DNA from: Basidiobolus meristosporus CBS 931.73
Lineage: Eukaryota > Fungi > Basidiobolomycota
Reading direction: 5' to 3'
DNA length: 64,000 bases
Assembly (NCBI GenBank): GCA_002104905.1
Contig: MCFE01000436.1
Coordinates: 11,387-75,386, forward strand
In this document: positions 3,991 to 29,700 of the stretch, in pieces
How the letters are laid out: each line of letters starts with the position of its first letter
How positions within the stretch are numbered: the stretch's first letter is position 1
Notes under the pieces: generated by a model
Seen by the model: the letters and a program-made list of their open reading frames with translations, nothing else
Database searches by the model: none
What the model was told of the DNA's origin: nothing
Translations under genes and position numbers: made by a program

Positions 3991-4184
3991 CCTCCACAGC
4001 CTCTATTGTTGACTGAGTGGAGATCCCACTGACAGACAAGGCTACAATGTCAAGAGCTCAAAAGACTATTGCAATGCCTTCAGTGGAGTTGTGGAACATT
4101 AATAGGCACATCAAAAGGCTGCAGCACTTCTTCAAGAGCAGTGCTCACAAATATGCACTGGAATATTGCAAGGATGGAGCCATG

Positions 4185-4982
4185 CACTGCATGCTGAAGT
4201 TCCAAATGATGGTCAGGAATCCAGGAAGGCATGCTGGCACAATCTGGTGCTGTTGCTTACAGTGTGTATTCTTCTTCTTGAAGCTCACCATCTGATTCCT
4301 CAAGGTATTCACTTACTCACTGTCTGATACTTTGGAACTGTTGGCTGGATGAGTCCAGTGTATGTAGCTCTCAGAAGCCACTTAGCTCTACTAATATATC
4401 ACATAGTTCATTTGTCATTGGAGGCAAAAACTTATTCAAAATCTCTTTGGTTCCCAAAGTTGAGGCACAAACAAATATGTCCAGCTTGTACTGAGCAAGT
4501 TGCATGCAAAATTGTTCCCTTGCAGCTTCTTCATCAAATCCCCTCACTCTCAGCTCATTCTTGCTATCAGTTCTTGTCTTGTTAAATATCTTTTTACATA
4601 TTTCCACTGGCATCTTGATGTAGAACTCATTCCACAACTTTCTACTCAGATTCTTCCATCTCTGTCAGCTCTCAGAGGTATCTAGTTGTGCTAGATTAAT
4701 GAGTAGTGCCCAAATATCTCTATGAGGGCTCATCATTGACACCTGTGCCATACTAAAATCATTTGGCAAGAACTCAAACAGATCCAACATTGACTTTAGT
4801 AGTCTGGACAATGCTAGTGAGCTGCAGGATAGGTTTTGTCTGGGCTATACTAAAGCTGAGGTGAGACTTGGTATAGGGAGCATATTGATGGATCTGGATA
4901 CTTATAAAGTATTGTATTGGCATCAACCTGGTCTTATATGAAATATATATGAAAACTAATCTGATTGTTGAATTTTTCATAT
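4185..4982 (-). mobile_element. Partial copy of the ISL2-like element (ORF2 region only)
   Basis: Aligns by eye to about 19880-20690; ORF 4371-4637 is homologous to 20116-20313. Confidence 0.75.
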
Positions 4983-4985
4983 ATT

Positions 4986-5222
4986 AGACATGCTCCTTTG
5001 GATAGGGCCACAGAGTGCCAGCCTGTTTTTAGTGCTGGATTGTTCTGGCACTCTATGGCACTATCTGGCACTATAATTTCTACCATAATGCCAGTGGTAG
5101 AATATAGTAATTGATAATTTTACTCAATCTTACACAGGCTGCTCAGAATAGTGCTTTCCTTGCTTTATTTACTCTCCATAATGCTCCAGAAACATTTCTC
5201 TCAATGGATGTCTTGTATGACC
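4986..5222 (-). mobile_element. Inverted right end of the ISL2-like element (TIR plus transposase 3' end)
   Basis: Reverse complement of about 21770-21999; starts with the TIR variant AGACATGCTCCTTTG. Confidence 0.75.
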
Positions 5223-5284
5223 CTATGAAAAGAAAATTGGTCATGTGGGTGAATTCAATCCTGGTCAGCCATCAGGATCCCATT

Positions 5285-6019
5285 AGACTTGTTCTATTGA
5301 ATAGTGCCACATGGAGCCATGAGTGCCAATTGATGCCATAGTGTGCCAGGGAGGCCAAGTGCGCCTATACTTAGCCACAGAGTGTCAAACATAGCTCTGC
5401 ATCCTCATGCAAAGCAGCCCCTGTGTTTCACTGATTGTACTGGAGATATTCCATTTTTTGATCTTTTTTTGTGGATCAATGTTGTGCAACATGTTTAAGA
5501 GCACAGATGAATTGAATATATGCACCTGGCACTCAATACCTATGGCACTCTGAATCTAGCTCCTGTAGCTTGTATCATGTCACAAAAATGAATGGCACTA
5601 TCATGGTCCACTGGTACTATCTGGCACTAATTTAAAAATATTAGCCCTAATGTAAGACCTATAGAAAGTACTTATAGTGCCACATAGTATTAGTGGCCCA
5701 AGATAGTGCCATGCATTTTTGCGACATGATACAAGCTACAGGAGCTAGATTCAGAGTGCCATAGGCCTTGGGTACTAGATGCATGTCTTCAGTCCTTCTG
5801 TGCTTGTACACATCCTGCACAACATTGCACCACAAAAAAAGGTCATAAAATGGATTTTCTCCTCCATAATAGGTGAAACACAGGGGCTGCTTTGTATGAA
5901 GAAGCAGAGCTATGTTTCACACTCTGTGGCCCAGTTTAGGTCTGCTATGCCTCTCTGGCACACAATGGCACTATTTGACATTCATGGCTTAATGTGGCAC
6001 TATCCAACTGAACAAGTCT
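5285..6019. mobile_element. Foldback/MITE derivative with ISL2-like TIRs; nearly the whole element is a palindrome
   Basis: Ends are AGACTTGTTCTATTG and CAACTGAACAAGTCT. Arms 5285-5632 and about 5674-6019 are inverted repeats around a ~40 bp spacer. Confidence 0.8.
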
Positions 6020-6461
6020 CTTAAGAGACTGTCATAATACCAGCAGCTTGGAATTAGTGACCCTCTCAACAATCTTATGATGGGTTCAACACAGCATTTT
6101 GCTAATTTTACTACCAAATAACGTAATAAAACTTGACAGGGTTTGCTTGGTACTGTGAAGATAATTGCATAGTCTTGTTTCAGTCCTATTGTCCTCTACA
6201 ACTATTGTAAATGAATTCAACCTGCCAGGACATCTAATTGCCTTATATAGTGAAAAATTTGACGGTATTTCAACAAGCTCACAGTCAGACTCTGATGGCA
6301 TTATATTGGTAGTATGGTGGCATACAAGTAGTTCTGTATAATGTTACCATACCAATTTACAAAGTGGTATTTCCTTTTTCTACCTCCCCTTGTGCAATTC
6401 TTATATTACACTGTCACCTCACTCCTCTTTATTTGCTTACCCACACCTACCTTGGGTATAT

Positions 6462-6829
6462 TGTTACAAGTCTTGGTATAAGAGTTGTAGAGGAATAGGG
6501 AGTTTAGCTAGTATTGTATTCACTAAAACTTGAACTGATTTTTATTGAGGTTCCAGCAGCTCCTTATATACATTTTGCCAGATCAATTGCTGACTAATTG
6601 TATTTCCTAATGTAGGTTGTGGCTGATGACTCATTTGATTGCATCATCATCACCCAATAAGATCCTACTTAATATATCTATTTCTGTCTGATAAGGATCT
6701 GCTGATTCATTTGCTGACTAATGCTACTGATTTCATAGATAATACTGATATACTGATAACCTAAACATATACTAATTGATTTGACTAAAAACTGATCTAA
6801 CTTAAACATTCAAGCGGCAGATCATAACA
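6462..6829 (-). repeat. Solo LTR of gypsy family A
   Basis: TG...CA ends; homologous to 17706-18073 and 25265-25633; no matching TSD. Confidence 0.85.
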
Positions 6830-6832
6830 AAA

Positions 6833-9800
6833 TCACATATAGTTTGAATCAAGAAAAACTATGGCCTCCTGCTTACTAACCTCTACAAACATGCACACCT
6901 GCCGCAATTGACATACTTCTATCACCTCAACTTTACGGCTTTTTAGTGTGATACTTGCAAAGTTGCCATTTACATTGTAACACTGGTTACACAAAAATCT
7001 TGCAAACATATGCTTGGTTGTCACCACATTTGCCATGAATACCTCCTGAATATCTGCAAAGAGCTTCTTGGTATTTAGCCCATAGACTTGTTCCATTGTG
7101 CCATTCCAGGGCATGCGGCGCAATCCATGGTCTCTAAGAACAATGGGGCATGAAATTGTAGCTACTAGTAGGCAGGATTGCTCTTGGACAATTTTGCACC
7201 ATGTGGGACAGTCTTGCACACTATGGCACAATCTGACACAATGAGGTGGGCACAAATGATTGTGCCAACTTGTGATGCTTGCATCACGTGCGCAATTGGA
7301 TACTGCTATTATGGTGGGTAACATCCGGTACTTGGATATGTTTCTTTAATATAAGTTAAATAAATGCATATCACACTATAAACTACACTGATTCTTACCA
7401 TTTGGTTACCATCACTCCAATTAAGTCATATCTTAGTGGTTAATTGGTCCAAAAGTATTCTGAAGCTGTCAGCTCCCAATTGGCTCTTTGACCAATACAC
7501 AAGCTACCTGACTTGCCATCAAATATCCTATTTTGCCCATTAAGGAAGTTAATCCCTGATCCTAGTGATTGGACAAGGTGTCATAGCTAGCACGCAACAA
7601 ATTATGTGGGTGTTTAACCAGATCAAATGGCAGCACTGGTGCCACAGATGATGTATACATATGCAGGGTGTTTATTTATAGGGGTCCTGTCTCAAATGTG
7701 AGACAACCTTGAGATTGTTTATATCAAAATTTAGTAATGATTTGCAATTCAATGTGATTGCTTCATCTTCTCTTAGGTTTTTTTCTCACAGGAATTACCA
7801 CTGAGGCATTTGGTAGTGAATCACTTTGCACACCTAAACTACTATCTTGTTGACTATCCTCCTGGCTACTTGTATAATTGTAGTCAGTAATTTGCCTCCT
7901 AGTTGTTGAGTGTAATGCTGCAGCTTGGCTGCGCTGAATTGCTCCAGATGATGCAACTGAGCCAGCCTGCAGTGCTATGCACTAATGCGTTTTTTTACTT
8001 GCCCAAGGCTCTGGTGGTGGAGGCACTTCATGTGGGTCAACATCAGTCAGTTCACCAGTAGCAACTTGCAAAGGTTGGGTGTAATGGCATGCACAGATGC
8101 AACTTTATACGCTAGCATGGCCCTTGGCTGAGTTCAATGTGATGCCGCTTGTTGACACAACTTGGCCTGCTCCAATGAACTTGTGTCTTTTTGAGCAGCT
8201 TGGCAAGTTCTGGTGGTTTTGCTCTGAAGTGTACATGTTGACCCTATACGCGTTGACTCAATGCGGAGCGCTCTTGTGAAGGGTGTTGGTGCAGTTTGGA
8301 CTGACATGTACAGGGGTGCTGAAGTTGCAAGGGATGGTAGGGAATCCAGCAAGGCATGCTGGTGCAACCTAGACAATGTTGCTTGCGGCCTGTATTCTTC
8401 CTCTTGAAGCTCACCTTCTGATTCCTCAAGGTATTCACTTAACCTGTGTCTGATACTTTGGAACTGCTGGCTGGATGAGTCCTGTGTATATTGCTTGCAG
8501 AAGCCACTTAGCTCTACTAATATATTACATGGTACATTTGTCATTACAGGCAAAAACTCATTCAAAATCTCTTTGGTTCCCAAAGTCAAGACATTACCGG
8601 ACATGTCTGGCCTGTACTAGACAAACTGCACGCTAAATTATTCCTGCATGGCTTTCTCATCAAATCTCCTCACTCTCAGCTCATTCTTGATTTCAACACT
8701 TGTCTTGTTATACATCTTTTTATATACATTTGCTGGCATCATGATGTAGAACTCATGCCACAGCTTTCTACTCAGGTTCTTCCATCTGTGTCAACTCTCC
8801 AAGGTATCTGGTTGTGCTAGATTAATGAGTTGTGCCCAAATATATGTATGAAAGCTCATCATAGACACTTAAGCCATACTGAAGTCATATGGCAAGAACT
8901 TGAACAGATCCAACGTCAACTTTTCCAGCCAGACTGTGCTTGTGAGCTAGGGCGTGGGTTTTGTCTAGGTTGTACTACAGATGAGTTGAAATTTAGTATA
9001 GGGACCATAGTGCTGCATTTGGATACCTATGCAGTAGTGTATTGGCTTCAACCTGGTATTATGTCAAATACATGTGAAAACCAATGTGATTGTTGAATTC
9101 TCCATATATTATGCATGATGCATCTTGGATAGCATTGACACAGATGCAATCTTATCAATTGCCGATTTCCTATTTGATTATAGACTTGTGAGTACAACGT
9201 CAATAAAATTACCCAGTCATTGTTTGAGGATAACATTTGCAACATAATGATGGGATACATGGCAACTGATGGAGAATTAATCACAATGCCTGAAAAATCA
9301 GATAAATAAAGCTGATTGTGCCAAATCAATTCAAATCACCTCAGCCAAATCTTCTACCAATTTTAATATGACCTACTCATCTGAATGGCTTTTTCTCACC
9401 AATCCCATCACTACCACTGGATTTCCTTTTGACACACTAGAGGAGATCTATACCAAGCACTGTGGGCCATCTGCCCTAATCTACCTAAGGAGATCCCCGG
9501 TTAAGCTTCTCTGCTATTACAAGAGCTATTGCCCTACAAGGTTTCATTCCACCATCCATGGCAACACAAGTCCTAAAAGCTCTCATTCCTAGCAGACAAC
9601 AATAGAGAACCACCTTGCTGAGGGTATGAAAGACTAGAGTAAGCTTAGAGTACCAGGTTCAGGAGCTCCAATAGACTTGCATATCTCCAAGTGCTCAGCT
9701 ACAGGTTCCATATAGGGAGTATTTTGGATACCTTCCCAGTCAGGATTAACAAGCCATCTAGAGCGCAGAGGCACTTTTATTCTGGCAAGTACAAGGCACA

Positions 9801-11365
9801 CTGTGTGAAGTTTCAAGCACTGTCTGACATTGAGGGTAACATCATCTGGTTTAGTGGGCCATTTGCTGGAAGTAGGCATGACAAAGCACTCCGGCTAGAG
9901 AATCCTCCAGAATTCAGCAGAGGGGAGAAATGTATTTCAAACTTAGCTTGTATAGGAGAGGATTGTCAGAGATTAGGATGTATCACAGCTTATAGGAAGC
10001 CAAGGAGCGGTGTGCTTAGCAGGAAGCAGAAGCTCTACAACAAGATATTTAATCATTTTGAGTAAGAGTAGAGTGTACATTTGGACATCTAAAGCAATTC
10101 AGCATATTGGCAAGTAAATACAGAGGAAGGTCATATATAGGAAAAAACAGCAGAATATGTAAAATAGCGATGATACTATCAATGCACAGTATATTCATAC
10201 AAGAAGACATCCACTGAGAGAAATATGTCTGGAGCATTATGAAGAGTAAATAAAGTAAGGGAAGCACTACTCTGAGCAATATAAGTAATATTGAGTAAAA
10301 TTACCAGTAACTATAACCTACCCCTGGCATTATGGTAGACACTATAGTGCCAGATAGTGTCAGATTGATCCGGCATTAAAACAGGCTGACACTATGTGGC
10401 ACTATCAAATGGAACAAGTCTTATATATTCCTTTGCCCTGTTGGAATCTAGTCCCCCTTATAGGTGTGCTCTGGCTCTTGTTTGTGTGAATCTGTATTGA
10501 ATGGTGTAGAAGTTGGCTTATGACTAAGAGAAATCTAGCATACCTTGGTAGAGTTTACCTAATAAAAATTAGTTGCTTGTTGCACTCAACCAAACTTGGC
10601 ATTACTTAGCTGATCACACATGCATTGGGGCTGCCTAGCTTATTTATGCCATTGGCATAGGTGTCTCCATGTGAATATTTGTCCTCAATATTTTCCAACT
10701 ATTCCTGGTGGCCCTCTAAATGCCAACTCATCACATTCATGACAGACTTGAAGGTGATATTCTTGATCAGATTGTGATATAGTAGTTCCTGCAACTTGAC
10801 TTGTCTTTCTATCTCCCTACACATCCACTCCATAGGAAACTTACAAAAGGTGAAGCAAGGCCCAATATTCTCCACACACCATGCAAGATGGAGTAGAGAA
10901 TGGATACAGTAGTGGCAAAGTTCTTTGCGTTCTGCTTTATGTTTGTAGTATAGCTGCTCAAAGCATGTTACAAACCCCTCACACAACAGCTGTAGATGTG
11001 TCAAGGTGGCATTGGTGATTCACCTCTGGATCAATATTCCTACAATATCCATATATGACTCCCAATGCTTTCAATATACTCTTGGTAAGAATGGCTACAG
11101 AACACCTCCTAAATAAATACATATCCAGTTCATCCAGAGTTTGCATTTGTATTGATGCATTTGCATATGAATATTGATTGGAGCCCATGAGAAGTACTTG
11201 AGGTAGCAGATGCTCTGTATATCTTGCCAATTCTTTCAAATTTTTCCAGTATCTCAAAGGACTCATTTAGCTTGAAATGCCCCCTGTACAACTTGGTCAT
11301 CAGTATAGGAATATTGTTGAAAAGCAAATGCATTGCTCCCAGTGGAAAGCTTTTGCTCCAACAGA
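6833..11365 (-). mobile_element. Second CACTA transposase relic (pieces 10422-11365 and 6833-7083) split by the ISL2-like insertion
   Basis: ORFs 11130-11333, 10979-11266 and 10699-11004 (HSLLHLAWCVENIGP...FPMEW) parallel 1-700. Removing the insert restores GGA ATA TAT GGG CTA AAT (GIYGLN). Confidence 0.75.
7084..10421 (+). mobile_element. Full-length ISL2/IS5-like (PHIS-group) DNA transposon, copy 1, degenerate
   Basis: TIRs AGACTTGTTCCATTG (7084) and CAAATGGAACAAGTCT (ends 10421); transposase fragments 9368-9592 and 9691-10065; ORF2 fragment 8134-8604 on the minus strand. Confidence 0.85.
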
Positions 11366-11800: not shown

Positions 11801-14800
11801 GTTATTAGGACCCTGTAGCAGCCCCTTAGCATATAAGATCTCCAATTAACCATTGGATTAATTTGGTATTATTAGAGATTTGTTAAGTTCTTTGCAAGTA
11901 TTGCAGCACCATTGACTGACATCCTCAATAAAGGCAACACCTCAAAGTGGGACATAACTTGTCAGACTGACTTCCAGATGTTCAAGATGAACTTGCTAAG
12001 CTTCCAGCTTTAGAATACCAGACTGAAGAAAAGAGTTTTCTCTGTGCACAGATGCTTCAGACAATGCAATTGGTGGAGTAATGAGCCAAGAGCATGAAAG
12101 AAAGGACCACCCATTTGTTTTAATACAAGAAATCAAGCTTAACATAGCAAAACTATCCAGTGCATGAGTAGGAGATGCTTGCCACAAAGTACCGCTTGAA
12201 GACCAGGAGATGCTACATTGAAGAAGCCAAGTGCACTGTGAAAGCTGATCATGTCTCACTCAAGTCTATATTTACTCAGAAAGGACTGTCCAGAAGTATG
12301 GCAAGACGGCGTGAGCACATTCAGCAATTTGGCTTGGAGATTATTGACTGCCCTGGGAAAGGCAACATGATAACTGATGTCTTATCAAGACTAAGAACAA
12401 GTTGCACAACTCAACTTGGTGCAAGAATTAGATTGGCCCGGCTTATTACCAAAGTACTTGGAGGCCCAAGCCATTAACAAAGAGTTGGATGAAGACATTA
12501 AGAAGATGATCCATGATTAAGCCAGCAAATTTGTAGTACAAGATGGAACACTCTACCAAATTATTGATGGACATCCTACTGCCTATTGCCCTTATGTTGC
12601 TTGTCTGGATTTCATACGTAAAATACCTAATGGATATGAAAATCTTGGAGCTGAAGGAACCTATAGTCTTTTGAAATCCAGAGCATGATTGCTCCGAATG
12701 AAACATGATATTGAGATGCTGGTGAAAACATGCCCAAATTTCCCAATCAACCAAGACCAACCGCAGAGAGTTACCAAAGTCTTTCCCTTGGAGCCTGCAT
12801 GACCAATTGAGAGCTGGGGAATTGACTTTATTGCAAGACTGCCAACCACCAGGAAATGCAACTATTGGAGCCTGGTAGCAATTGGCCATGCCACTAAATG
12901 GGCAGTTACTAAAGCTGTACATGTAGTCAGTGAGCAAGAGGCAGCAAGTTTCTTCTACCATGAGATTCCTCTGAAGCTTGGATGCCCTGTAGAAATGTTA
13001 CCTGATAGAGAAGCCAACTTCAATGAATCACTTGGAAAAATGCTGGCCAAGTATGCAAATGGAGCTGTCAGTAGATGGATTGAATAAAAACCAAGCTTTT
13101 TTCCTGCAGAGTGTCATTGCACACCACCACCTAGCAATGGCCATTTTATGTTTTGTAGGATGGGAGCCAATGATTCCAGGAGATCCTACTCAATCAAAGC
13201 TTACAGACACCTTGGAAACATAACTCAGTCAGCCAGGTAGACACCAGCAAGTAGAAAAAAGACATCAAGAGGCACAGGCCAAAGTATCTCAAAGTGCAGA
13301 AGAGATGAAGCAGAAAATGCTGCACTATATGGGACAATCTTACACACTATAGTGCAATCTGACTCAATGAGGTTGGCATGACTGATTGCACCAACTTGTG
13401 ATGTTTGCATCACATGCATAATTGGATGCAACCATGGCAGTAGGTAATGTCCTGTACTTGGATATCTTTCTTTTGTGTAAGTGGACATAAACGTGTATCA
13501 CACTGAAAACTACACTGATATTTACCTTTTTAGCTACTATCACTGAAATTGGATGGTATTTCAAAGGCTGACAGGTCTAAACGTACCCTGAGCCTGTTGG
13601 CCCCTGATTGGCTCATTGTTCACTACACAAGCTAACTGATTTGCCATCTAACATCCCATTTTGGCCATTGAATAAGTGAATTTGTGATATTAGTGATTGA
13701 ACAAGGTGTCATAGCAAGCACACAACTGATTGAATAGGGGCAAATTTGGTCAAATAGCTGCACTAGTGTTACAGATGATGTATATATATGCATGGAGCTT
13801 ATCATATTGGCTCTGTCTCAAATATGAGATACTCTGCATTTACTTATATCAAATACTGAGTGATCACTGATTTGCAATGGCTTAATTTGGATTGCAAAAA
13901 ATGAGTTTTTTAGATCATGACAAATGGCAACAACTCAATGTAATTGCATAACCTTCTACTAGGTTCTTTTCTCTCAGGGATTACTATTGAGGATATTTAG
14001 CAGTGATTCACTTTGCACACCTAAACTACTTTCTTATTGACTATTATCTTGATTACTTGTGTACTTGTAGTCACTATAGTACCTCCTAAATGATAACAGA
14101 AACAGCCTGAAGTGCTACATGCTGATGCATTCTTTTACTTGTCTCAAATGTGAGACAACCTTGAGATTGTTTATATCAAAATTTAGTATTGACTTGCAAT
14201 TCAATGTGATTGCTTCATCTTCTCTTAGGTTTTTTTCTCACAGGAATTACCACTGAGGCATTTGGTAGTGAATCACTTTGCACACCTAAACTACTATCTT
14301 GTTGACTATCCTCTTGGCTACTTGTATAATTGTAGTCAGTAATTTGCCTCCTAGTTGTTGAGTGTAATGCTGCAGCTTGGCTGCGCTAAATTGCTCCAGA
14401 TGATGCAACTGAGCCAGCCTGCAGTGCTATGCGCTAACATGTTCTTTTACTTGCCCAAGGATCTGGGTGGTGGAGGCACTTCTGGTAGGTGATGTCAGTC
14501 AGTTCAACAGGAGTAAATTGTGGATGCTCAGGTATAGTGGCATGCACTGGTGAAACTTGATGTGTTGGCATAGCTCTTGCATAAGTTTGATGTGATGTTA
14601 CATTTTGATGCAACTTGTCCCGCTCCAATGGACTTGTGTACATATGAGCAATTTAGCAAGTTCTGGTAATTTTGCCCTAAAGCACGCACTGATTTAATGT
14701 GCATCAACTTGATGTGAGGTGGTCTTGTGAAGGGTGTTGGGCATAGACTAGATTGATTTGCACCAGCACACAATCATTGTAGGGGATGGTGAGGAGTCCA

Positions 14801-17050
14801 GCCAGGTGTGCTGGTGTTATCTAGACCCAGTTGCTTGCAGTCTATTTTTTTCCTCTTGAAGCTCATCTTATGATTCCTCAAGGTATTCACATAGCCTCTC
14901 TCTGATACTGTGCAACTCTTGCCTTGATGAGGCTTGTGTATAATACTCTTAGAAGCTACTCAGCTCTACTAGCATATCATGTATTACAATAGTCATTTGA
15001 GGCAAAAACTCACTCACAATCTCATTGGTTCCCAAAGTGGAGGCACAAAAAGACAGGTATAGCCCACACTGTGCAAATTGCAAGCAGAATTGCGTGTGTG
15101 TGGTATCCTCATCAAATCCCCACACTCTGAGTTCAATATTGATTCCATTACTTGGGTCATGCTGAGATCATTTGGCAAGAAGTTGAATGGAATTATCATT
15201 GCTTTTTCTGGCTTAGACCACACTTGTAGGCTGAGCAATGAGTTTTGTCTGGGTTGTACAGAAGATGAGTTAAGACCTGGTGCAGGGACCATAAAAACAG
15301 ATTTGGATACTTCTACAGTATTAAATTGCTATAAAACTGGGGTTATGTGATATATGTATGAAAACAAATGTAATTGTTGAATTTTCCATATATAATGCAT
15401 GATGCGTCATGGATGGCATTGACATGGATTTATTGACATCTATTGCAGATTTCCAAGTTGAATATGAAATTGCAAGTGATTAATCAACAAAATCACCAAG
15501 TCATTGTTTAAGGATGAAATTTGCAACATATTATGGGATGCGTGACAATTGATGGAGATCTATAATATTGTAAGGAAGATTAGAAAAATTAGGCTGATTG
15601 TCCCAAATTGATTCACAACACCTACACTAAATTACTGTCCAATTTGATATGACTTAGTCATCTAAATTGTCTTTTCTCTTCAATCCCATCACTACCACGG
15701 GATTTCTTCTTACAACATTAGAGAAGATAAATACCTAGGACTGTGGACTATCTCCCTTAACCCACTCAAGGAGATCCCCTATCAAGCTTCTCTGGTGTTA
15801 TAAGATCTAATGCACCATAAAGTTTCATGCCACCATTCATGGCAACAAGAGTCCTAGAAGCTTTGATTCCTAGCTGACAGCAATGGAGAACTACCTTGCT
15901 AAGGGTATGAATGACTTGGAGCAAGCTTTGAGTACTAGGCTCAGAAGCTATAGATTCCCATATCCCAGAATGTTCAGCAACAGGTTCTATATTGGAAGCA
16001 TTGTGGAAACCTTCTGGTAAGGATTAAAATACCTTCCAGAGGACAGAGACACTTTTGTGCTGGCAAATACAAGGCATGCCATGTGAAGTTTCAACCACTG
16101 TCTGGCATTGAGAGTAACATCATCTGGTTGACTGTGCCATTTCCTGGAAGTAGGCATGTCAAAGTACTCAGGGTAGTGAGTCATTCAGTACTCAATTAAG
16201 GGGAGAAATGAAGAGCAGACATAGCTTATGTAAGAGAGCATAGTCAGAGATTAGGAAGTATTACAGCTTGTAGGAAGCTAAGGAGTAGTTTGCTTAGCAG
16301 GAAGCAGAAGCTCTACAGTGAGATATCTGATCATTTCAGAGTGGGCATCATGCATACACTTGAATATTTAAAGAGACTCAGTATATTGGCAGGTAAATAT
16401 AGAGGAAAGCCATATATGGGAAAAAAGAGCAGATTAGGTAAAATTGCTAAGATACTTATTGATGCACAGTGTATGCATATAAAAAGAATCCACTGATAGC
16501 AATGTGCTTGGAACTCTATGAAGTGTAAAACAAGCAAGAAAAGTACTGTTATGAGAAACATAAGTATGATTGAGTTAATACACCAGTAACTGCAGCCTAC
16601 CATTGGCTTCATGGTAGAATTAGAGTGCTGGATAGTGCTGTATGGTGCCAGATTAATATAGTACTATTGCCATGCTTGCACTTTGCGGCACCATCCAACA
16701 GAACAACTCTAAAATCCATTTGCAACCTACCAAGTAGTGCACAAACAAGGGAATATCCGGGAAAACTTAGTACATAAAGACAGAATCAGGCTTGCAAGAC
16801 TTGCTGACAATACTGAACCATTATAATACTGGTATCACAACCAAAGAGACTCAGAGGAGCCCTTACAGTTCTAGTAGGGGGAAATGTTATGATATGCTGC
16901 CTGAATATTTAGGTTAAATCAGTTTTTGTCAAATCAAATAGCGTTATACTTGGTGTTTCAGTATATCAGTGTTATATATCAAGTCAGCAATATCAGTCAG
17001 CAGATGAATCAGTAGATTCTTGCCAGATGGAAATATATATGTTAGATTTA
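11800..17050 (+). mobile_element. Gypsy family A pol relic (RT thumb, RNase H, integrase), interrupted by ISL2-like copy 2; polypurine tract and 3' LTR starting at 16885
   Basis: RNase H-like TDASDNAIGGVMSQ and integrase-like WGIDFIARLP remnants; 16711-16884 is the reverse complement of about 18074-18250; AGTAGGGGGAAA precedes the TGTTATGAT LTR start. Confidence 0.8.
13310..16710 (+). mobile_element. ISL2-like element copy 2; left TIR deleted, most decayed copy
   Basis: Collinear with 7190-10421; right TIR variant CAACAGAACAACTCT ends at 16710. Confidence 0.8.
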
Positions 17051-17064
17051 TTCTGTGAGCAAGT

Positions 17065-17657
17065 ACCACATTGAGCCATAAGTGCCAAACAGTCTAATTG
17101 TGTGCCAGAGAGATGTAGCACACCTAAATTGGCCACAAAGTGCATAACATAGCTCTTTGTCTTCCATCAAAGCAGCCCTTGTGTTTCACTCATTATGCTG
17201 GAGAAATCCATTGTTTGACTATATTTATCAATGTTCAGCAGGATGTGTAAGCCCACAGAGGGACTGAGGATATGTATCCTAAATGTTGGCCCTGAGGTAA
17301 AATTTATTCATGCACTCAAAGTGCCATACAGTACCAGTGGATCAAGATAGTGCCATGCATTTTTGTCACATGATGTAAGCCACAGGAGCTAAATTCAGAG
17401 TACTGTGGGTATTGGTACTAGATACATTTCTTCATTCCTTTTGTGTTCTCACACATCCTGCACAACATTGATCCAAAAAAAAGGTCAAAACATGAATATT
17501 CTCCAGTACATAGGCAAAACACAGGGGCTACTTTGCATGAAGATGAAGATCTATGTTTGCATTCTGTGGTAAAATATAAGTCACTTGGCCTCCCTGGAAC
17601 ATGATGCATCATTTGGCACTCATGGCACAATGTGGCACTATCCAACAGAACAAATCT
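17065..17657. mobile_element. Second foldback MITE copy (left TIR lost)
   Basis: About 17100-17290 is the inverse of about 17400-17600; homologous to 5340-6019; ends CAACAGAACAAATCT. Confidence 0.75.
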
Positions 17658-19336
17658 ATTAAGTAAGATACAAATAGATAGAAATGATGCAATCACATGA
17701 GTTATTGTTACAGACTCTGATATGAGAGTTGCAGAGGAATAGGGAGTTTAGCCAGTATTATAGTCACTAAAACTTGAACTGATTTTTATAGAGGTTCCAA
17801 CAGCTCCTTTTATATATTTTGCCAGATCAATTGCTGACTAATTGTATTTCCCAATGTAGGTTGTGACTGATGACTCATTTGAGAGCATCATCATCACCCA
17901 ATTAGATTATACCTAAAAACGCTATTTCTGTCAGTTTAGGATCTGCTGAATTGTCTGCTGTTAAATACTGCTCATCTGATAGATAACACTGGTATATTAT
18001 AGACCAAACATAAAACTAATTGATCTGATTAAAAACTGATCTAACTTAAACATTCAGGCAGTGTATCATCACATTATCCCCTACCAAAGTTGAGAGGGCT
18101 CTCCTGGGCCTCTTTTCTTGTTATACCAATATCTTGATGGTTCAGTATTGTCAGCAAGTCTTGCAAGCTTGAGTCTATTTCTATGAACTACGTCTTCCCA
18201 GATATTACCTTGTTTGTACACTAATTGGTAAGTTGCAAATAGACATCCTCCAATGATCTTGAAAGATCCGCTCTATTGTGGCTCAGACTTATTCTGTGTG
18301 TTGTTTCTCAGTAATGCAAAGTTCCCAATTGTCAACGCCCCTGGTGATATAGTCTTATCAAGTCTCTGCTTCCTCTATTCTGTACGCTGAGGTACTTTGG
18401 CCTGTGCCTCTTGACATCTTTGTTTCAGCTGTTGGTGTCTACTTGGCTGACTGAGTTCTTCTTTTACGGCATCTGTGAGCTTTGGTTGTGTGAGATCTCT
18501 TGGATTCCTTGGTTCACATCCATACACTAAGTAAAATGGCAATTGTTGGGTGGTGTTGTGCACTCAAACTCTGCAGGCAAAAGTGCCTAGTCTAAAGACA
18601 TGCTCCATTGTACGGTGCCAGGGCATGCGGCGCATTCTGCGGTCTTTAAGAACAATTGGGTGCAATATTGTAGCTACCAGTAGGCAGGATTGCTCTTGGA
18701 CAATATTGCACCATGTGGGACAATCTTGCGCACTATGGCACAATCTGACACAATGAGGTTGGTACAAAAAATTGCACCCACTTGTATTGTTTCATCACAT
18801 GTGCAATTGGATACCACTATTATGGTAGGTGAGATCCAGTATTTGGATATGTTTCTTTAATGAGAATGGAAATAAAGGAGTATCACACTATAAACTACAC
18901 TGATACTTACCATTTTGGTTATCATCCCTCCAAACTGATGGTATCTCAGTGGTTAATTGGTCTAAAAGTATCCTGAAGCTTTCAGCCCCCAATTGGCTCT
19001 TTGACCAATACACGAGCTACCTGATTTGCCATCAAGTATCCCATTTTGCCCATTAAGCAAGTTAATCCCTGATCCTAGTGATTGGACAAGGTGTCATAGC
19101 TAGCACGCAACCAATTATATGGGTGTAAATCAGATCAAATGGCAGCACTGGTGCCACTGATGATGTATACATATGCAGGGTGTTTATTTTTAGGGGTCCT
19201 GTCTCAAATGTGAGACAGCATAAATATTGCTTATATCAAAATTTAGTAATCACTGATTTGCAAAGGCTCAATGCGGATCGCAAAAAAAATGTGTTATTTG
19301 GATCATTATAGATCATAGCAACTCAATGCAGTTGCA

Positions 19337-20583
19337 TCATCTTCTCCTAGGCTTTTTGCTCACAGTGATTGCTACTGAAGCATCTGGTAGTGATTCACTT
19401 TGCACACCTAAACTACCTTCTTGTTGACTATCCTCTTGGCTACTTGTGTATTGGTAGTCAGTATTTTGCCTCCTAATTGATGAGTGCAATGCTGCAGCTT
19501 GGCCACACTGAATTGCTCCAGATGATGCAACTGAGCTGGCCTGCAGAGCTATGTGCTGACGTGTTCTTTTACTTGCCAAAGGCTCTGGTGGTGGAGGCAC
19601 TTCATGTGGGTCATCATCAGTCAGTTCACCAGAAGAAACTTGCTGATGGTCAGGTGTAGTGGCACATGCAGACGCAACTTGCTGTGCTGGCATGGCCCTT
19701 AGCTGAGTTTGATGTGATGCTGCTTGTTGACATGACGCGGCCTGCTCCAATGGACTTGTGTCTCTTTGAGCAGTTTGGCAGGTTCTGGTGGTTTTGCTGT
19801 GAAGCATGTGCGTTGACCCAATACACATTGAGTCAATGCAGCGCACTCTTGTGAAGGTTGTTGGCATGGTTTGGACTGATGTCTGCCAGCACGCTGAAGT
19901 TGCAAGGGATGGTAAGAAATCCAGCAAGGCATGCTGGCGCAATCTAGACAATGTTGCTTGCGGTCTGTATTCCTCCTCTTGAAGCTCATCTTCTGATTCC
20001 TCAAAGTATTCACTTACCCCCTGTCTAATACTTTGCAACTGTTGCCTGGATGAGTCCTGTGTATATTGCTCTTGGAAGCCACTTAGCTCTACTTATATAT
20101 CATGTAATACATTAGTTATTTGAGGCAAAAACTCATCAAAATCTCTTTGGTTCCCAAAGTCAAGGCACAAACGGACACGTCCAGCCCATACTGTGCAAAT
20201 TGCATGCAAAACTGTTCCCCTGTGGCTTCCTCATCAAATCTCCTCACTCTCAGCTCATTCCTGATTTCAATACTTATCTTGTTATATATCATCTTACATA
20301 CATCCACTGGCATCTTGATGTAAAACTCATGCCACAGCTTTCTACTCAGGTTCTTCCATATCTGTCAACTCTCCAAGGTATCTAGTTCTGCTAAATTAAT
20401 GAGTAGTGCCCAAATATCTGTATGAAGGCTCATCATAGACACTTGGGCCATACTGAAATTATTTGGCAAGAACTCAAACAGATCCAACATTGCCTTTTCC
20501 AGTCCAGACCGCACCTGTGAGCTGGGGGATGGGTTTTGTCTGGGTTGAGCTAAAGATGAGTTGAGACTTGGTATAGGGACCAT
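19337..20583 (-). pseudogene. ORF2 of the ISL2-like element, about 410 aa after repairing two stops and one frameshift; family unknown
   Basis: ORFs 20365-20583, 20116-20313 and 19337-20038 join into one frame; homologous segments are present in the other copies. Confidence 0.65.
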
Positions 20584-20890
20584 AGTGACAGATTTGAATA
20601 CTTTTACAGTGGTGTATTGGCATAAACCTGGTCTTATATGAAATATATGTGAAAACTAATGCGATTGTTGAATCTTCCATATATTATGCATGATGCATCT
20701 TGGATTGCATTGACACAGATCAGATCACATCAATTGCAGAGTTCCTATTTGATTATGGATTTATGAGTAATACATCAATAAAAATACCCAGTCATTGTTT
20801 GAGGATGATTTTTGCAACATAATGAAGGGATACATGGCAATTGATGGAGGTTTAATTGTAATGCATGGAAAATGAGATAAATAAAGCTGA

Positions 20891-21865
20891 TTGCGCCAAA
20901 TCAAATCAAATCATCTTAGCCCAATTCTTTCCAATTTTGATATGACTTTTTCATCTGAATGGTCTTTTCTCATCAATCCCATCACTACCACTGGATTTCC
21001 TTTTGACACACTCAAGGAGATCTATACCAAGTACTGTGGTCCATCTACCCCAATCTACTCAAGGAGATCCCTTGTTAAGCTTCTCTGCTATTACAAGAAC
21101 TATTGCTCTACAAGGTTTCATCCCACCATCCATGGCAACAAAAGTCCTAGAAGCTTTCATTCACAGCTGACAGCAATGGAGAACCACCTTGCAGAGGGAA
21201 TGAATGACTTAGAGCAAGCTTGCAGTAGTAGGTTTAGAAGCTCCAATAGACTTCCCTATCCCAGAGTGTTCAGCAACAGGTTTCATATAAGGAGTATTTT
21301 GGACACCTTCCCAGTCAGGATCAACAAGCCTTCCAGAGTGCAGAGGCACTTTTATTCTGGCAAGTACAAGGCACACTGTGTGAAGTTTCAAGCATGGTTG
21401 GACATTGAGGGTAACATCATCTGGCTTAGTGGGCTATTTGCTGGAAGTAAGCATGACAGAGCACTCTGGGTAGAGAATCATCCAGAATTCAGTAGAGGGG
21501 AGAAATCTATGGCAGACTTGGCTTATATTGGAGAGGATTGTCAGAGATTAGGATGTATTACAGCTTATAGGAGGCCAAGGAATGGTGTGCTTAGCAGGAA
21601 GCAGAAGGTCTACAATGAGATATTTAATCATTTCAGAGTGAGGGTTGAGCATACATTTGGATATCTGAAGAGATTCAGCATATTGGCAGGTAAATATAGA
21701 GGAAAGTCACATAGAGGAGAAAACAGCAGAATTGGTAAAATAGCTAAGATACTTATCAATGCACAGTATATTCATACCGGAAGACATCCTCTGAGAGAAA
21801 TGTGTCTGGAACATTATGAAGAGAAAATGATGCAAGGAAAGCACTACTCTGAGCAACATAAGTAA
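20891..21865 (+). CDS. DDE transposase, DDE_Tnp_4/IS5-ISL2-like (probable ATG at 20942, about 307 aa)
   Basis: Open frame with ILDTFP (D), YSGKYKAHCVKFQ, GSKHD, MADLAYIG (D), RVRVEHTFGYLKRFSILAGKYR (E). Confidence 0.9.
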   Translation: MRQIKSNHLSPILSNFDMTFSSEWSFLINPITTTGFPFDTLKEIYTKYCGPSTPIYSRRSLVKLLCYYKNYCSTRFHPTIHGNKSPRSFHSQLTAMENHLAEGMNDLEQACSSRFRSSNRLPYPRVFSNRFHIRSILDTFPVRINKPSRVQRHFYSGKYKAHCVKFQAWLDIEGNIIWLSGLFAGSKHDRALWVENHPEFSRGEKSMADLAYIGEDCQRLGCITAYRRPRNGVLSRKQKVYNEIFNHFRVRVEHTFGYLKRFSILAGKYRGKSHRGENSRIGKIAKILINAQYIHTGRHPLREMCLEHYEEKMMQGKHYSEQHK

Positions 21866-24800
21866 GATCAAGTAAAATTACCAGTAACTATAACCTACCA
21901 CTGGCATGATGGTAGAAATTATAGTGCCAGATAGTGCCAGATCAATCTGGCACTATAAACAGGCTGGCACTATGTAACACTATCCAATGGAACAAGTCTT
22001 ATATACTCATCCCATCTACTAGCAGCTCCATTTGCATACTTAGTCAGGATTTTTCAAAATAATGCATTAAGCCACTCAGGGACTCCATTAGCTCTAGGGT
22101 GCTATGCTGAGGTTTTCAATTGCTTGATCTGCTGAAGTTCCAGGTAAGCTTCCAATATCTTTAACATAAAGCTTGCTCCTCTATTGGATAAATCCCTGCA
22201 GGGCATCCAAAATTTGTAAGGATCCCATGGTTGATGAAACTTGCAACTTCTTGCTCACTAGCTACAGGTCCTGCTTGAGCCACTTGTCATTTAGTGGCAT
22301 GATCAATTGCTACTGTGATCCAATGGTTGCATTTCCTGATGTTTGGCAGTCTTCCACTGAAGTCAATTCACCATCTCTCAAATGGTCTCATAGGCTCTAA
22401 GGGGAAGAGTTCAGCAATTATCTGTGGTTGGCCTTAGTTGATTTGGCAATTTAGGCATGCTTTCACTAGCTTCTCCACGTTTAGTTTCATCTGGGGCCAC
22501 CATGTTCTGGCTTTCACAAGGCTATAGGTTCCTTCAACTCCAGGATGTATGTATCCATTGTGTAGCTTATGTATTAAATCCAGACAAGAAACATAAGGGC
22601 AGTAGGCAATAGGGCTTCTATTAACAATTTAGTAGAGTGTTCTATCCTTTACAACAAATTTGCTGGCTTCATCCTGGATAATCTTTTTGATCTTTTCATC
22701 CACCTCATTGGGAATGGCTTGGTCCTCCAAGTACTTTGGTAATAAGCTAGGCCAATCTGATTCATGCACCAAGTGGAGTTGTTCAACTTGCCCAAGTCTT
22801 GATAAGGCATCAGCAACCATGTTGTTTTTCCCAAGGTAGTAGAAATCTCCAAGTCAATTTGTTGAATATATTTACTCTATCCTGTCATTCTTCAGGAGTG
22901 TACCCTCTAAGTAAATATACACCTGAGCAAAGTGTAATCAGTCTTCACAGTGCACTTGACTCCTTTAATGTAGCATATCCAGGTCTTCAAGCAGTGTATT
23001 ATAGTAAGTATCTCCTTCTCATGCACTGGATAGTTTTGTTCTGCTGAGTTCAGTTTCTTGATTCAAAGGCAACTGGGTAGTTCTTTCCCTGGGGTTCTAG
23101 GCTCAACACTCCACCAATTGAATATTCTGAAGCATATGTGCACAGAGTAAACTCTTTTCTGAAGTCTGGAATGCTTAAGCTTGGCAGCATAGCAAGCTTA
23201 TTCTTAAGGGCCCAAAAGGCAGTCTCAAAGGTTATGCACCACTTTATGGTGTTGTCTTTCTTAAGAATAGCAGTTGCAGGGGCTGCAATATTTGCAAAGA
23301 ACTTGACAAATCTCCAATAATAGGAAACCATTCTAAGAAATGATCTTAGTTCTGAGATGCTATGGGGCTGCTTCAGGTTCTTGATGACTTCAACCTTCTT
23401 TATGTTCAAGGTCACTTCTGTGATGGTCCAAAAGCTCATCAATTCAGGGTATGGGTACTTATTCTTCAGTGCAGCTGAGTTGAGGGCTCTATGGTCAATG
23501 CACATCCTAAGTGTTCTGCCCCTCTTTTTCACAAAGAGTACTGATGCTCCCCAAGGTGACTTGCAAGGTCCAATATATCCTTGCTCCAATAACTGATCTA
23601 TTTGTCTCTTCAGCTCTTACAAATCCAATGGATGTATTCTATAAGGTGTCTTACTCACTGAGGACCATCTTCTGTGTCAATGGCATGATCCACATCTCTG
23701 ACTGGGGGTAAGCCAACAAATACATCTGGAAACATGTCTGAATATTCCTTCAAAAGAGTGTGGACCTTCTGGGGTGCTGGAGTGGAGGAGTCCTCCTGCA
23801 ATACTACCATGATGATCATCTGGGTGTATTTTCTAAGTGCTACACAGAACTGTGTCTTGCTCAGTTCATTTGTTTCACAAACACTGGAATTGACCAAGCT
23901 GAAATCCAGTCTGGCAGGTAATAGCTCATAGGTCATGTTGTTCTTCAGGATCTGAGTGGCATGGGTTCTCCAGTTGCTTGATGGATTACAACAAAATAGC
24001 CAGGTTTTTCCAAGTGCATGGTCAAACTTGCAGCTTCCAAATATAAATGCCTGTAGGTCTTCTTCATAGTCATTGATCTTCATTCTCACTGGCTGAGTAA
24101 TATGGTTGATTATGTGACAGTTCCCATCTGCTGTCAAGCCTGAAGTTGATTTGGTGAGTTCTGAGTTAATTCAAGCTTTTAAAGAATACAGCTCTGACAC
24201 GTACTCATGCAATACTCCTGAATCAATCATGATTTTGGTAGGTACTCCATTGATGACTCCATTCAAGTGTAATAGCTTTGCTGAGTTCAAGGTCATTTAG
24301 GATAAGTGTTCTTCTGTCACATGGGAGGTAAGCTCTGAGTCTTCTTCATGTTCATCCTCCATGTGGCAATGCTCAAGGGGCTCAAAATGGTTGAAAGTTC
24401 TTGATGACCCATGTTGATTTCATCTCTGTGGGTAGTACTTTGCAATTTTTCCTTGCTGGTGGCAGTTGAAGCAAAGGCATTCTATTTACATTCTTCTGTG
24501 GTGGGATTCTTCTGCATAGCATCTATTTCCCTTGGCATTGCTTCTGGTTTTCTTCTTTCATAGTGATTGTAGCCTCTCAGACTAGTCATTGTGAGTATCC
24601 CAACTCCAAACATAGCTAAGTCAAAGTCAATAGCAACCTTGATAGCTTTTTCAATAGTCTGAGGTCTCTGATTATTAACTACCTTGCAAGTTTGTTTTTT
24701 CAACTCATCAATAAAGTATTCAGCTTGTTCCAGGGGTACATTCTTTCAGTTTGTCCAAGCAGATATCTATATTCATAGATCTACTCTTGAACCATTCCCT

Positions 24801-25849
24801 CTATCTGAGTGTTCTCAACTTCCTTCTTAGCAGTGTCTGCTGATGTGAGGGTTCAAAGCATCCTGAATTTCAACACAAACTCATTGCAGGTAGAAACTTT
24901 AGAACATCCCATCATGGTGGCTGACCTGATCTTGTTGTAGTACCACTGCAAAGCTGCATTTGCTAGGTCAGAGGCTGCATAATGCAACTTGCTTTCTGGA
25001 GCAAATCCCTCAGCCATGAAAACTTCTTCAATCTAGGAAAGCCAGGTTCCCAGGTCTTCATTGGCTCTACCATGGTACTGGTTAACCTTAACACTAAAGT
25101 TGCACTTGACAGGGTTTTGCTGGCTTTGGGCCACAGTATTCATTCTTTGTTGCTGCTGGGCCATGGTTTGATGCATATCATCAATCCATGTTTGATTTTC
25201 TGACATCTCAAGGGAGGCTTCATCCTTCTTCAGGAGGGATGTTTCTAATTATTGCTACTACCAATGTTACAAGTCTTGATATAAGAATTGTATAGGTATA
25301 GGGAGCTTAGCTAGCATTATATTCACTAAAACTTAAGGAGATTTTCATTGAGGTTACAGCAGATCCTTATATATATTTTGCCAGATCAGTTGCTTGCTAA
25401 TTGTATTTCATAATGTTGGTTGTGGCAGATGACTCCTTTGATTGCAACATCATCACCCAATTAGATTATAATTAATAGAAATATTTCTGTCTGATAAGGA
25501 GCTACTGATTCATCTGCTGACTAATTGTACTGATCTGATAGATAACACTGATATACTGATAGGCTAAATATAAAGCTAACTGATTTGATTAAACACTGAT
25601 CTAATTTAAACATTGGAGTGGTAGATTGTAACATCATCAGTCAAAACCCACATTAGGAAGTACAATCAGTTAGTAATATATCTGGCAGAATGCTTACCAG
25701 GAGCTGCTGAGACCTTAATAAAATCAGTTCAAGTTTCTGTGAATTCAATACTGGCTAAACTCCCTATTCCTCTGCAACTCTTATATCTGGACTTGTAACA
25801 ATTGATTGCCCACACATATTATTTGCTTATCCTGTTTCTGGGCTGTTTC

Positions 25850-26829: not shown

Positions 26830-28300
26830 AACTACCGCTTATAGGAATAATTGCAGTGGGCTTTTAGGGGCAGAGTGAGCTGCAGCTCTATGGCACTATC
26901 TAGCAATGTGATTCCTACCATTATGTAGTGGTAGGATATAGTAACTGATGATTTTGCTCAGTCTTACATACATTACCCTGATTGGCAATCTTGATTCATG
27001 TACTCTTCATAATTGTCACAATACATTCTTTTTAGTGATTTTCTACTTATGTGAGCACATTGTGTATTTATAGGGACCTAGACTGTTTTGTAAATAATGC
27101 TAGTTTCTTCTCTAAATGAATTTCTGCTGTGGTTACCAACTAATATGGGGAATCTCCTTATGTGTCCAAATGTTTGCACTTGTTATAGATCTTCTCTAAT
27201 GTGGCAACAGGAAATCCGGCAGTAGTGATGTTATTGCTACACAGAGACTATTTGTATGTGTAAGTCATAATAAGATTGGTAAGCAATAGAGTGCAGATGG
27301 TTTGAAATTGTTTAGTGCAATCTGTTTAGCTATGCTTAGTCTCAGCTCATTCTTAATACACCCCAGTCAGACTTTATCCCCTGACTTACAGGCATGGTCC
27401 AGACTAAAAATATTGATGTTGAATCTCTTTGGGCTCTTGTCAAGTGATGTAGTATGGCCCATGTCCTCATACAGATATCTGTGAGCTATTCATTAAATTG
27501 GCAGAACTGTATACCTCAGTGAGTCATAGCAAGGGAGAAATTTGAGTGAAAGCTATGGCAAGAGTTCAAAATCAAGATGCTGTAGATGCATTTAAGATAA
27601 TAAATAGCCGGACAAGTATTGAGGTCAACAACAAGCTAAGAGTGGGGGGATTTGATGTGGAGGCTGCACATAATTTGCACAATCCACTTGTGTCCCACCT
27701 GTAGGAACCAAGGATATTTGAATAAGCTTTTGTCTTAAATAACAAGTGTACTGCATGACATATTAGTAGAACTAGATAGCTTCCAAGAGCATACACCCAG
27801 GATTTATCAGGGCAATACTTGCTAGGTATCATACAAAGGGTAAGCAAGTGTCTTGAAGAATCAGAAGGTAGGCTTCAAGAGGCAAAATATAGACCACAAG
27901 TTACTGCACCATCACTATGCCAGTGTGCTTCAATGAAGTCCCCACAAAGCCTAGTAGCAGCTGCATGCTGGGATACAGCAACTCAGTTGACATTTACATC
28001 CTTGTCAGAAGTGCTATGCACCAAGTTGATGCAAGTCAAGTCAATGTGTGTGGTCCATAGCAATTCTACTAGAACTCAGCAAGCTGCACAATTAGCCATA
28101 GATTCATTGGAGCCAAAGCATCATCTGGTGCAGCTCAGGGTGGGCAAGCAAGAGCACAGCACTCATCAACAAGTAGGCAGCCCATTGAGGAGTTCACATG
28201 TAGCTAAGATGATAGCCTACAAGGAAGTAGTTTTCATGTGCAAAGAGAATTATCACCAAATGATTGTGTAGAAATGTCTGCAAAAAAAACTAGAAGATGA
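26830..28300 (-). mobile_element. Inverted, internally deleted, old ISL2-like copy
   Basis: ORF 27819-28271 (+) is an ORF2 homolog (EESEGRLQEAKYRPQ); the right-end subterminal region appears reversed at about 26880-26960. Confidence 0.65.
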
Positions 28301-28312
28301 TGAAATAACATA

Positions 28313-29700
28313 TGTTATGATCTACTGCTTGAACATTTAATCAGATCAGTTTTTAGTCATATCACTTAGTTTTAGGCTTAGACTATCAGTATATCAGGGC
28401 TATCTGTCAAATCAAGATCATTAGTCAGCAGATGAATTAGCAGACCCTTTTCATACAGAAATAGATACATCAAGTAAGATCTAATTGAGTGATGATGGTG
28501 CAATCAAATGAGTCATCAGCCTGATTCTATATTAGGAAATAAAATTATGCAGCAATCAATCTGGCAAAATGTACAAAGGGAGCTGCTGGAACCTGAATAA
28601 AAATCAGTTCAAGTTTTATTGAATACAATACTAGCTAAACTCCCTATTCATCTACAACTCTTTCATCAAGACTTGTAAAATTGGTGACAGCAATAACCAG
28701 AAACCTCCCACCCTGAAGGAAGAAGGAGCCACCCTCAAGATATCAGAAAATCAAGAATAGTCTTATGCTATGCAGCAAATTCTGGCCCAACAGTAACAGT
28801 TATTCCAGATCCTTAGCCAGCAGCAACAGGGAAGGAATACTATGGACCAGAGAAAGCAAAACCCTGTCAAGAACAACTTTAGTGTGAAGGTCAACCAGTA
28901 CCATGGTAGAGTTGATGAAAATCCGTGAACTTGGCACTTCCAGACTGAAGAAGCTTTTAAGGCTAAGAGAATTACTCCAGAAATCAAGTTGTACTATACA
29001 GCCTCTTACTTAGCAGGTGCAGCTTTACAGTAGTATCATAACAAGGTCAGGTCAGCCACCATGATTGGATGCTCTACAATCTCTAGCTTAGGATTGTGCA
29101 GCACACCATTAATTCCAAGGTTTCACCCCAGGATCCTGATGGCTGATCTGGATTGGATTCACCTAGAGAGCCAAGTTATTTTCCACAATGACTTCCTGGC
29201 TGTCTTCCACATGCTACCTCTGTTATGAAGTAAATTCCCTTGATCTCACACATTTAAAAGCTGTATCATTGAGTGTGTCCAGATATGTTGGCTATCTTGC
29301 TGATGGCAGGGTATTCATAAATCAGCTGATATTATGTACTTTGACATGACAGCCTTATTCAAGTACAATATCTTGCCAGCTACTTATTACTTTGATTACA
29401 GTACATAGCTCCTTCTGCTACCTAGCATATGCTATGTCAGGTGAGTATGTGATGCCTTGTGGCTCACCTTAGCTGTCCAAGTTTGTCGTATAGAATAAAA
29501 GCTTTGAAAAACAAGGCTCATTTGTGGGCCTATCTCTGTCTATAATGGTATTTCTTGTGAAATCAACAGAATCCCAATGTGCATTTGGAGAACCCATAGA
29601 GAAGCACCTGAACAGTTCATAAAGCTAACTGAGCTCAGCTACCCAGTTACTAATGAATATTAATATCGATTGCTCAAAAATTAGCATGCTTTCACCTTTA
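28313..29700 (+). mobile_element. Gypsy family A 5' LTR (28313-28680), PBS and gag fragment
   Basis: LTR homologous to the other family A LTRs; PBS TTGGTGACAGC; gag remnant YHGRVDEN...ASYLAGAALQ. Confidence 0.75.

Follow-up and report, generated by a model that had tools for sequence, protein, structure and literature searches.

The DNA examined here is a 64,000-nt stretch of Basidiobolus meristosporus CBS 931.73 (contig MCFE01000436.1, positions 11,387 to 75,386, forward strand), referred to below as the window, and all coordinates are positions within it. One transposon copy in the window, copy C, carries an open gene for a DDE transposase and, head-to-head with it, the remains of a second open reading frame (ORF2) for a partner protein, both enclosed by terminal inverted repeats (TIRs). 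BLASTN of this copy (18596-21999) against the window located copies A, B, D, and E (Table 1). The TIR starts AGACTTG and is 15–28 bp long, and copies C and A measure 3404 and 3338 bp. The 15-bp terminal motif occurs seven times in the window (up to two mismatches) where 0.27 occurrences are expected, and the right end of copy C resembles the right end of copy A and the ends of a miniature inverted-repeat transposable element (MITE) over ~28 bp. An earlier, sequence-only reading of this DNA had proposed an element of ~3.3–3.4 kb with 15-bp TIRs, which these figures bear out. Probably, these are old copies in neutral decay, left by a cut-and-paste DNA transposon with two genes; it would belong to the PHIS superfamily, where the Pangu group (Repbase Harbinger2) is the best fit.

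The transposase ORF is open in copy C, from TTG 20891 or ATG 20942 to 21865; stops and frameshifts disrupt it in A and B. Its product matches Pfam DDE_Tnp_4 (E 2.1e-21, 76.6 bits, cut-off 24.8) and, as a second match, DDE_Tnp_1 (E 2.7e-7), while a third, TARP (E 0.0035, 17.7 bits), falls below its cut-off. No domain other than the related DDE_Tnp_4 and DDE_Tnp_1 exceeded the Pfam cut-offs, and neither THAP nor helix-turn-helix (HTH) was found. In an alignment with nine database relatives, D121, D192, and E236 fall in conserved blocks. The IS5-family NCBIfam model NF033581 matches partially, over the catalytic region, at E 2.8e-13 and 49.9 bits against a cut-off of 140; NCBIfam IS5 scores have no discriminating power here, as relatives with other flanks score alike. 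Judged by its sequence, this is a compact DDE transposase, IS5-like and without an extra domain, and the property that defines the PHIS superfamily, an IS5-like DDE domain alignable to DDE_Tnp_4, is present. The proposal of a two-gene PHIS-superfamily transposon with an IS5-like DDE enzyme is upheld by the DDE_Tnp_4 match and the conserved D, D, and E.

The present length of the enzyme is partly a product of decay. A TAA stop at ~21824-21826, retained in copies A and B, has become AAA in copy C, where the ORF continues 13 codons beyond the ancestral end. Because A and B keep this stop and the closest database relative, the 294-aa P0001 (60% identity), terminates at much the same place, the original transposase was ~294 aa long. 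The compact enzyme of ~307 aa described previously is confirmed as an open ORF with a DDE_Tnp_4 match, but it is open only in copy C and its last 13 codons lie past the ancestral end.

ORF2 runs from an ATG at 20583 to a stop at 19337 and ends in KKPRRR, with a helical N-terminal half and a tail rich in Q, S, and A. In copy C it is interrupted by two stops, a TGA at 20365-20367 and a TAA at 20093-20095, and by the loss of 1 nt between 20137 and 20136. The head-to-head ORF2 of ~410 aa that had been reported thus stands as to its start and its end, but it is nowhere open in the window; the other copies are worse affected than C, and since ORF2 is broken in all of them, nothing in the window is autonomous now. 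Stop-free stretches of 251 codons in C, 160 in A, and 97 in D (4374-4664, the longest open piece of the N-terminal half) overlap in one register and could be stitched into a 342-column alignment. Because open runs of this length share a register in copies that are 14–22% diverged, ORF2 was once a real gene, its transcription divergent from that of the transposase, and we infer a shared promoter in the 358-bp spacer between the two.

Decay of the copies follows a consistent pattern. CpG observed/expected is 0.09–0.19 in the transposon copies versus 0.87 in the GC-rich genic stretch at 48–52 kb; TpG and CpA are in excess, and >80% of CpGs have been lost. Such a pattern is the mark of methylation and deamination of CpG limited to repeats, and the gene lesions are typical of methylated-CpG deamination, so that the window copies show methylation-type CpG decay killing transposon copies. 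Copies A, C, and D have a TGA at the same ORF2 codon. Given the extent of CpG loss, parallel CGA-to-TGA decay is a plausible origin, and if A and C have common ancestry it need have happened independently only twice. An intron that would remove the shared TGA was considered and rejected, as the GT..AG candidates of 28, 41, and 92 nt, inspected by eye on the alignment, were too short, out of frame, or inside conserved coding sequence. Codon-position divergence among copies is flat for ORF2 and equally flat for the transposase, which served as positive control, and branch counts give a ratio of nonsynonymous to synonymous proportions (pN/pS) of 0.38–0.49 for the transposase on intact and broken copy alike. 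As a bona fide transposase gene is equally flat, a test based on nonsynonymous and synonymous rates (dN/dS) is without power on ORF2 selection, and the divergence among copies is post-insertion decay.

Copies A and C may not be independent insertions. Their alignment continues 8–9 bp past both TIRs, and five repeat blocks occur in like order and orientation in 1–10.7 kb and 10.7–22 kb, at offsets of 10.6–11.8 kb and with 78–86% identity. In both halves the order is block 1-691, the D/B copy, the MITE, the 6459-6829 repeat, and the A/C copy. The window contains just two copies each of block 1-691 and of the MITE, which are those of the duplicated order. Because A and C have common flanks and the same order relative to three other repeats, we lean towards a single insertion over two transpositions, one that would have been doubled by an old tandem segmental duplication of ~11.5 kb and later rearranged. 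Otherwise, A and C would have inserted separately, each into a similar (TA)n target. The previous count of three near-full and several partial copies is accordingly right in that A, B, D, and E accompany C, but B lacks its left end and A and C probably count as one insertion. A further repeat, 12119-13086, recurs inverted at 22000-23067.

The 9-mer ATAGTGCCA occurs 17 times in the window against 0.76 expected, always in element or MITE ends and in both orientations; by analogy with the end-binding partners of related transposons, it is a likely candidate for the ORF2 binding site. The MITE has inverted arms of ~345 nt that are 83% complementary, and has in common with the autonomous element only the ~28-bp terminus and the ATAGTGCCA motifs. 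The flanks of its two copies (ATT/CTT and GTT/ATT), together with the ATT that flanks a lone element end at 4986, are compatible with an ANT target duplication. Evidence on target duplication comes from few, decayed insertions, with no clean empty site among them. The segment 18031-18521 was considered as an empty site for copy B and rejected, being an inverted duplicate of the flanks 13158-13314 and 16715-16927 with a remnant of ~121 bp inside. This remnant includes a TIR-like end and lies where the 3.4-kb element would sit.

Table 1 Features of the transposon family in the window (window positions)
Feature	Position	Strand	Remarks
Element copy C	18596..21999		3404 bp, TIR to TIR; sole copy with open transposase ORF
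Left TIR, copy C	18596..18610	+	2 mismatches to family motif
Right TIR, copy C	21985..21999	-	perfect 15-mer
DDE transposase, copy C	20942..21865	+	307 aa from ATG; Pfam DDE_Tnp_4
ORF2 remnant (partner protein), copy C	19337..20583	-	~415 codons; head-to-head with transposase
Spacer between the two divergent genes, copy C	20584..20941		358 bp
ATAGTGCCA cluster	21921..21973		four motifs, two per orientation; inside right end of copy C
Copy A	7084..10421		full length, 86% identical to C; both genes broken; probable segmental-duplication twin of C
Copy B	13313..16710		78% identical to C; left end missing; ORF2 with internal deletion and tail duplication; both genes broken
Copy D	4189..4992		fragment with N-terminal half of ORF2; 84% identical to C
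Right-end fragment, inverted	4986..5220		abuts copy D
Copy E	26891..28303		inverted, internally deleted, ~68% identical; transposase mostly deleted, ORF2 heavily decayed
Foldback MITE	5285..6019		735 bp; flanks ATT and CTT
Second copy of MITE	17044..17657		flanks GTT and ATT

Pangu elements, described by Han et al. 2015, make ANT target duplications and have TIRs of 11–40 bp that usually start AG or GG (PMC4482050). Autonomous copies are ~3487 bp long and carry two ORFs, a transposase 'without any other domains' and a second ORF that lacks known motifs in almost all of the described families; hosts include three basidiomycetes and two ascomycetes (PMC4482050). Pangu_Tmes (PIF_Harbinger-1_TreMes), for example, is 3280 bp long with a 16-bp TIR, a 322-aa transposase, and a 398-aa ORF2, and one Pangu family, Pangu_CGig, has an ORF2 with Myb_DNA-bind_4 (Table S3, PMC4482050). 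Pangu is equivalent to Repbase Harbinger2 according to Kojima 2025 (PMC12730594). The window family resembles this group in its length of ~3.3–3.5 kb, its AG-starting TIR, its two divergent ORFs, a DDE-only transposase of ~300 aa, a second ORF of ~400 aa without known motif, and its fungal host; the ATT at the MITE and the lone end is compatible with a 3-bp A/T-rich duplication. It agrees with Pangu in every anatomical feature and, in target duplication, in part. As its nearest database transposase is only 60% identical, it constitutes a separate family, probably a new one of the Pangu/Harbinger2 kind known from earlier work and not a new system. The suggestion of a new PHIS lineage, put forward as the best candidate for a new system, was not sustained, since Pangu had been described with the same anatomy (PMC4482050).

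Searches with ORF2 returned little. When seven stop-free pieces were scanned against Pfam (E up to 10), none gave a Myb/SANT, YqaJ, NAM-associated, trihelix, or F-box domain; the best matches lay at E ~0.09, with a weak SAP_new25 at 0.094, and the sole match named for an 'F-box protein' was Beta-prop_pof12 (E 0.16). The earlier view that neither Myb/SANT nor YqaJ is recognisable in ORF2 was thereby supported, and that of an F-box-like pattern was not. The stitched profile (A1, 342 columns) gave 0 matches among PDB sequences, among 3637 word-sharing candidates drawn from 5.8 billion proteins, and, by full HMMER search, among 1.84 billion representative proteins. Single pieces gave noise alone against PDB sequences, and the ESM Atlas returned only unnamed or unrelated clusters for two pieces. 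AlphaFold modelled the 97-aa piece from a 5-row alignment as all-helical (H2-15, H20-33, H45-58, H63-70, H73-94), at a predicted local distance difference test (pLDDT) of 43.5. By eye, the region around the TGA (residues ~55-110) shows a spacing of W and other aromatic residues as in a three-helix Myb-like motif, and two predicted helices after the TGA have helix-turn-helix spacing. We regard this resemblance, with low confidence, as a lead and not a result.

The canonical Harbinger partner is a Myb-like protein that binds the element ends, imports the transposase, and recruits it, according to the passage of PMC9392472 that cites Sinzelle 2008. By analogy with this partner, the ORF2 protein would use its helical N-terminal half, where the three-helix-like stretch lies, to bind the subterminal ATAGTGCCA repeats, and would take the transposase into the nucleus by means of its basic C-terminal KKPRRR. 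Its recruitment of the transposase to the ends would then allow excision, and insertion at A/T-rich sites with a 3-bp duplication. That ORF2, and perhaps Pangu partners generally, are no cryptic Myb/SANT proteins but represent a structurally new end-binding and import factor recognising ATAGTGCCA seems doubtful to us. If true, two-protein transposition would have arisen in separate PHIS branches with different partners.

Several points weigh against these interpretations. The Pangu/Harbinger2 placement rests on anatomy, compared with published descriptions. At the A/C insertion the left flank reads CAT or TAA and the right flank TAT, which, unlike the flanks of Pangu insertions, is no clean ANT duplication; in copy B, AAA comes directly after the right end. 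As to DNA binding by ORF2, its pieces yielded no Myb/SANT match in Pfam at E up to 10 and no PDB sequence match. The 97-aa AlphaFold model is unusable at its pLDDT and too poor for a fold search, and a stop (in C, the TGA at 20365-20367) cuts through the candidate three-helix region in every copy, so that only its halves were searched.

Relatives of the transposase offer some perspective on the partner. A transposase profile recovered 12 database relatives with 26–60% identity, all on contigs of at most 3 kb, and a metagenome scan found two loci with complete related elements. In the first (L001), which has 21-nt TIRs at 153-173 and 3186-3206, the genes for a 286-aa transposase and a 272-aa partner lie head-to-head, and GGATGC repeats occupy subterminal positions; the second (L002) has 17-nt TIRs and is flanked by TAA and TTA. 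Neither partner ORF has a Pfam domain, and hhalign and BLASTP detected no similarity of window ORF2 to either of them; nor are the two similar to each other. An AlphaFold model of the intact 272-aa partner had a pLDDT of 38.7, too poor for a fold search. As the partners of related transposases are mutually dissimilar, the partners of this transposase clade evolve beyond sequence recognition.

It is against this background that a new PHIS lineage, with a new kind of ORF2 partner unrelated to Myb/SANT such as a targeting or anti-silencing factor, has to be weighed, and we consider it unlikely. The lack of any relative of the ORF2 profile in the two large protein searches, and the two metagenomic partners without Pfam domain and unlike ORF2 and each other, count in favour of such a lineage. 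However, the null searches used broken, 14–22% decayed pieces of a fast-evolving accessory protein, and an ORF2 without motif is the published state of nearly every Pangu family and so does not define a lineage. An all-helical ORF2 with helix-turn-helix spacing may also, with low confidence in the model, be compatible with a cryptic Myb-like domain. The anti-silencing role once suggested for ORF2 found no support, as nothing points to such an activity.

A canonical PIF/Harbinger element with TWA duplication, whose Myb/SANT or NAM-associated partner has decayed past recognition in the window copies, is in our view quite improbable. Canonical elements (Harbinger3_DR, Ping/Pong) share with the window family a DDE_Tnp_4-type transposase and a second element-encoded protein, short TIRs, a 3-bp duplication, subterminal repeats to which a partner may bind, and Tourist-like MITEs that have only the termini in common with the larger element. 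Rust fungi have many such families of 3.3–3.5 kb, with 13–17-bp TIRs and an ORF2 of 290–440 aa labelled 'NAM-associated' (Table S1); moreover, the A/C insertion lies in TA-rich sequence with flanks TAA and TAT, and the distant metagenome relative L002 is flanked TAA...TTA. Against this, the window transposase is shorter and lacks an N-terminal extension, and no Myb/SANT, trihelix, or NAM-associated domain is detectable in ORF2 pieces at E up to 10 despite open stretches of 97 to 251 aa. The MITE and the lone end have ATT flanks and not TWA. The AGAC termini fit the AG/GG start of Pangu, although not exclusively, since PIF/Harbinger TIRs usually start with A or G (PMC4482050).

ISL2EU and Spy share an IS5-related DDE catalytic core with the window family, but ISL2EU combines a THAP/HTH-bearing transposase with a YqaJ exonuclease partner and AT duplications (PMC4482050), whereas Pfam finds no THAP, HTH, or YqaJ in the window element and the duplication is 3 bp and not AT. 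Spy inserts between AAA and TTT without duplication, a pattern not seen for the window family. The metagenomic element L001 lies between an A-run and a T-run (140-175 and 3186-3210) with no obvious direct duplication, resembling the AAA|TTT pattern of Spy. Bacterial IS5 is like the window element in the partial catalytic-region match to NF033581, and ANT targets have been reported for IS5 too (Han et al., PMC4482050); however, the score is far below the model's cut-off, the window element has two genes, and its host is eukaryotic.

That ORF2 was never a functional gene, merely a chance open frame opposite a one-gene element, is highly improbable: ORF2 is broken in all copies, shares its TGA codon in A, C, and D, gives no codon-position signal, and has no homologues in our searches, but its 251-, 160-, and 97-codon runs in one register in decayed copies far exceed chance at 40% GC, the transposase, certainly once a gene, is just as flat, the shared TGA fits parallel CGA-to-TGA decay, and the two-gene head-to-head layout is the rule in the superfamily.

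The main use of these results is in annotation, as they provide the Basidiobolus genome with a Pangu-type family for which the termini, the MITE, and a candidate for the binding motif are defined. The wider question is the nature of ORF2 in Pangu elements, a gap already acknowledged in the literature.

Some relatives of the transposase have additional sequences nearby. Three database relatives (P0002, P0006, and P0007) share a C-terminal extension of ~80 aa with a conserved WW-G-V motif, and an ORF near another relative (L006:2196-2576) has weak Tudor-like Pfam matches at E 0.01–0.1. The extension or the Tudor-like ORF might act as a chromatin-targeting module. In L001, a 724-aa ORF immediately beyond the right TIR (3410-5584) gives a weak JmjC match (E 0.0038, below cut-off), reminiscent of the dioxygenase genes that accompany DNA transposons in fungi.

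Within the window, copy B contains an internal tandem duplication of ~265 bp in the C-terminal tail of ORF2 (13995-14094 and 14260-14359). A separate repeat family of ~370 bp has four copies of ~85% identity, at 6459-6829, 17703-18073, 25262-25639, and 28313-28678, and the copy at 25262 starts with sequence like the transposon TIR.

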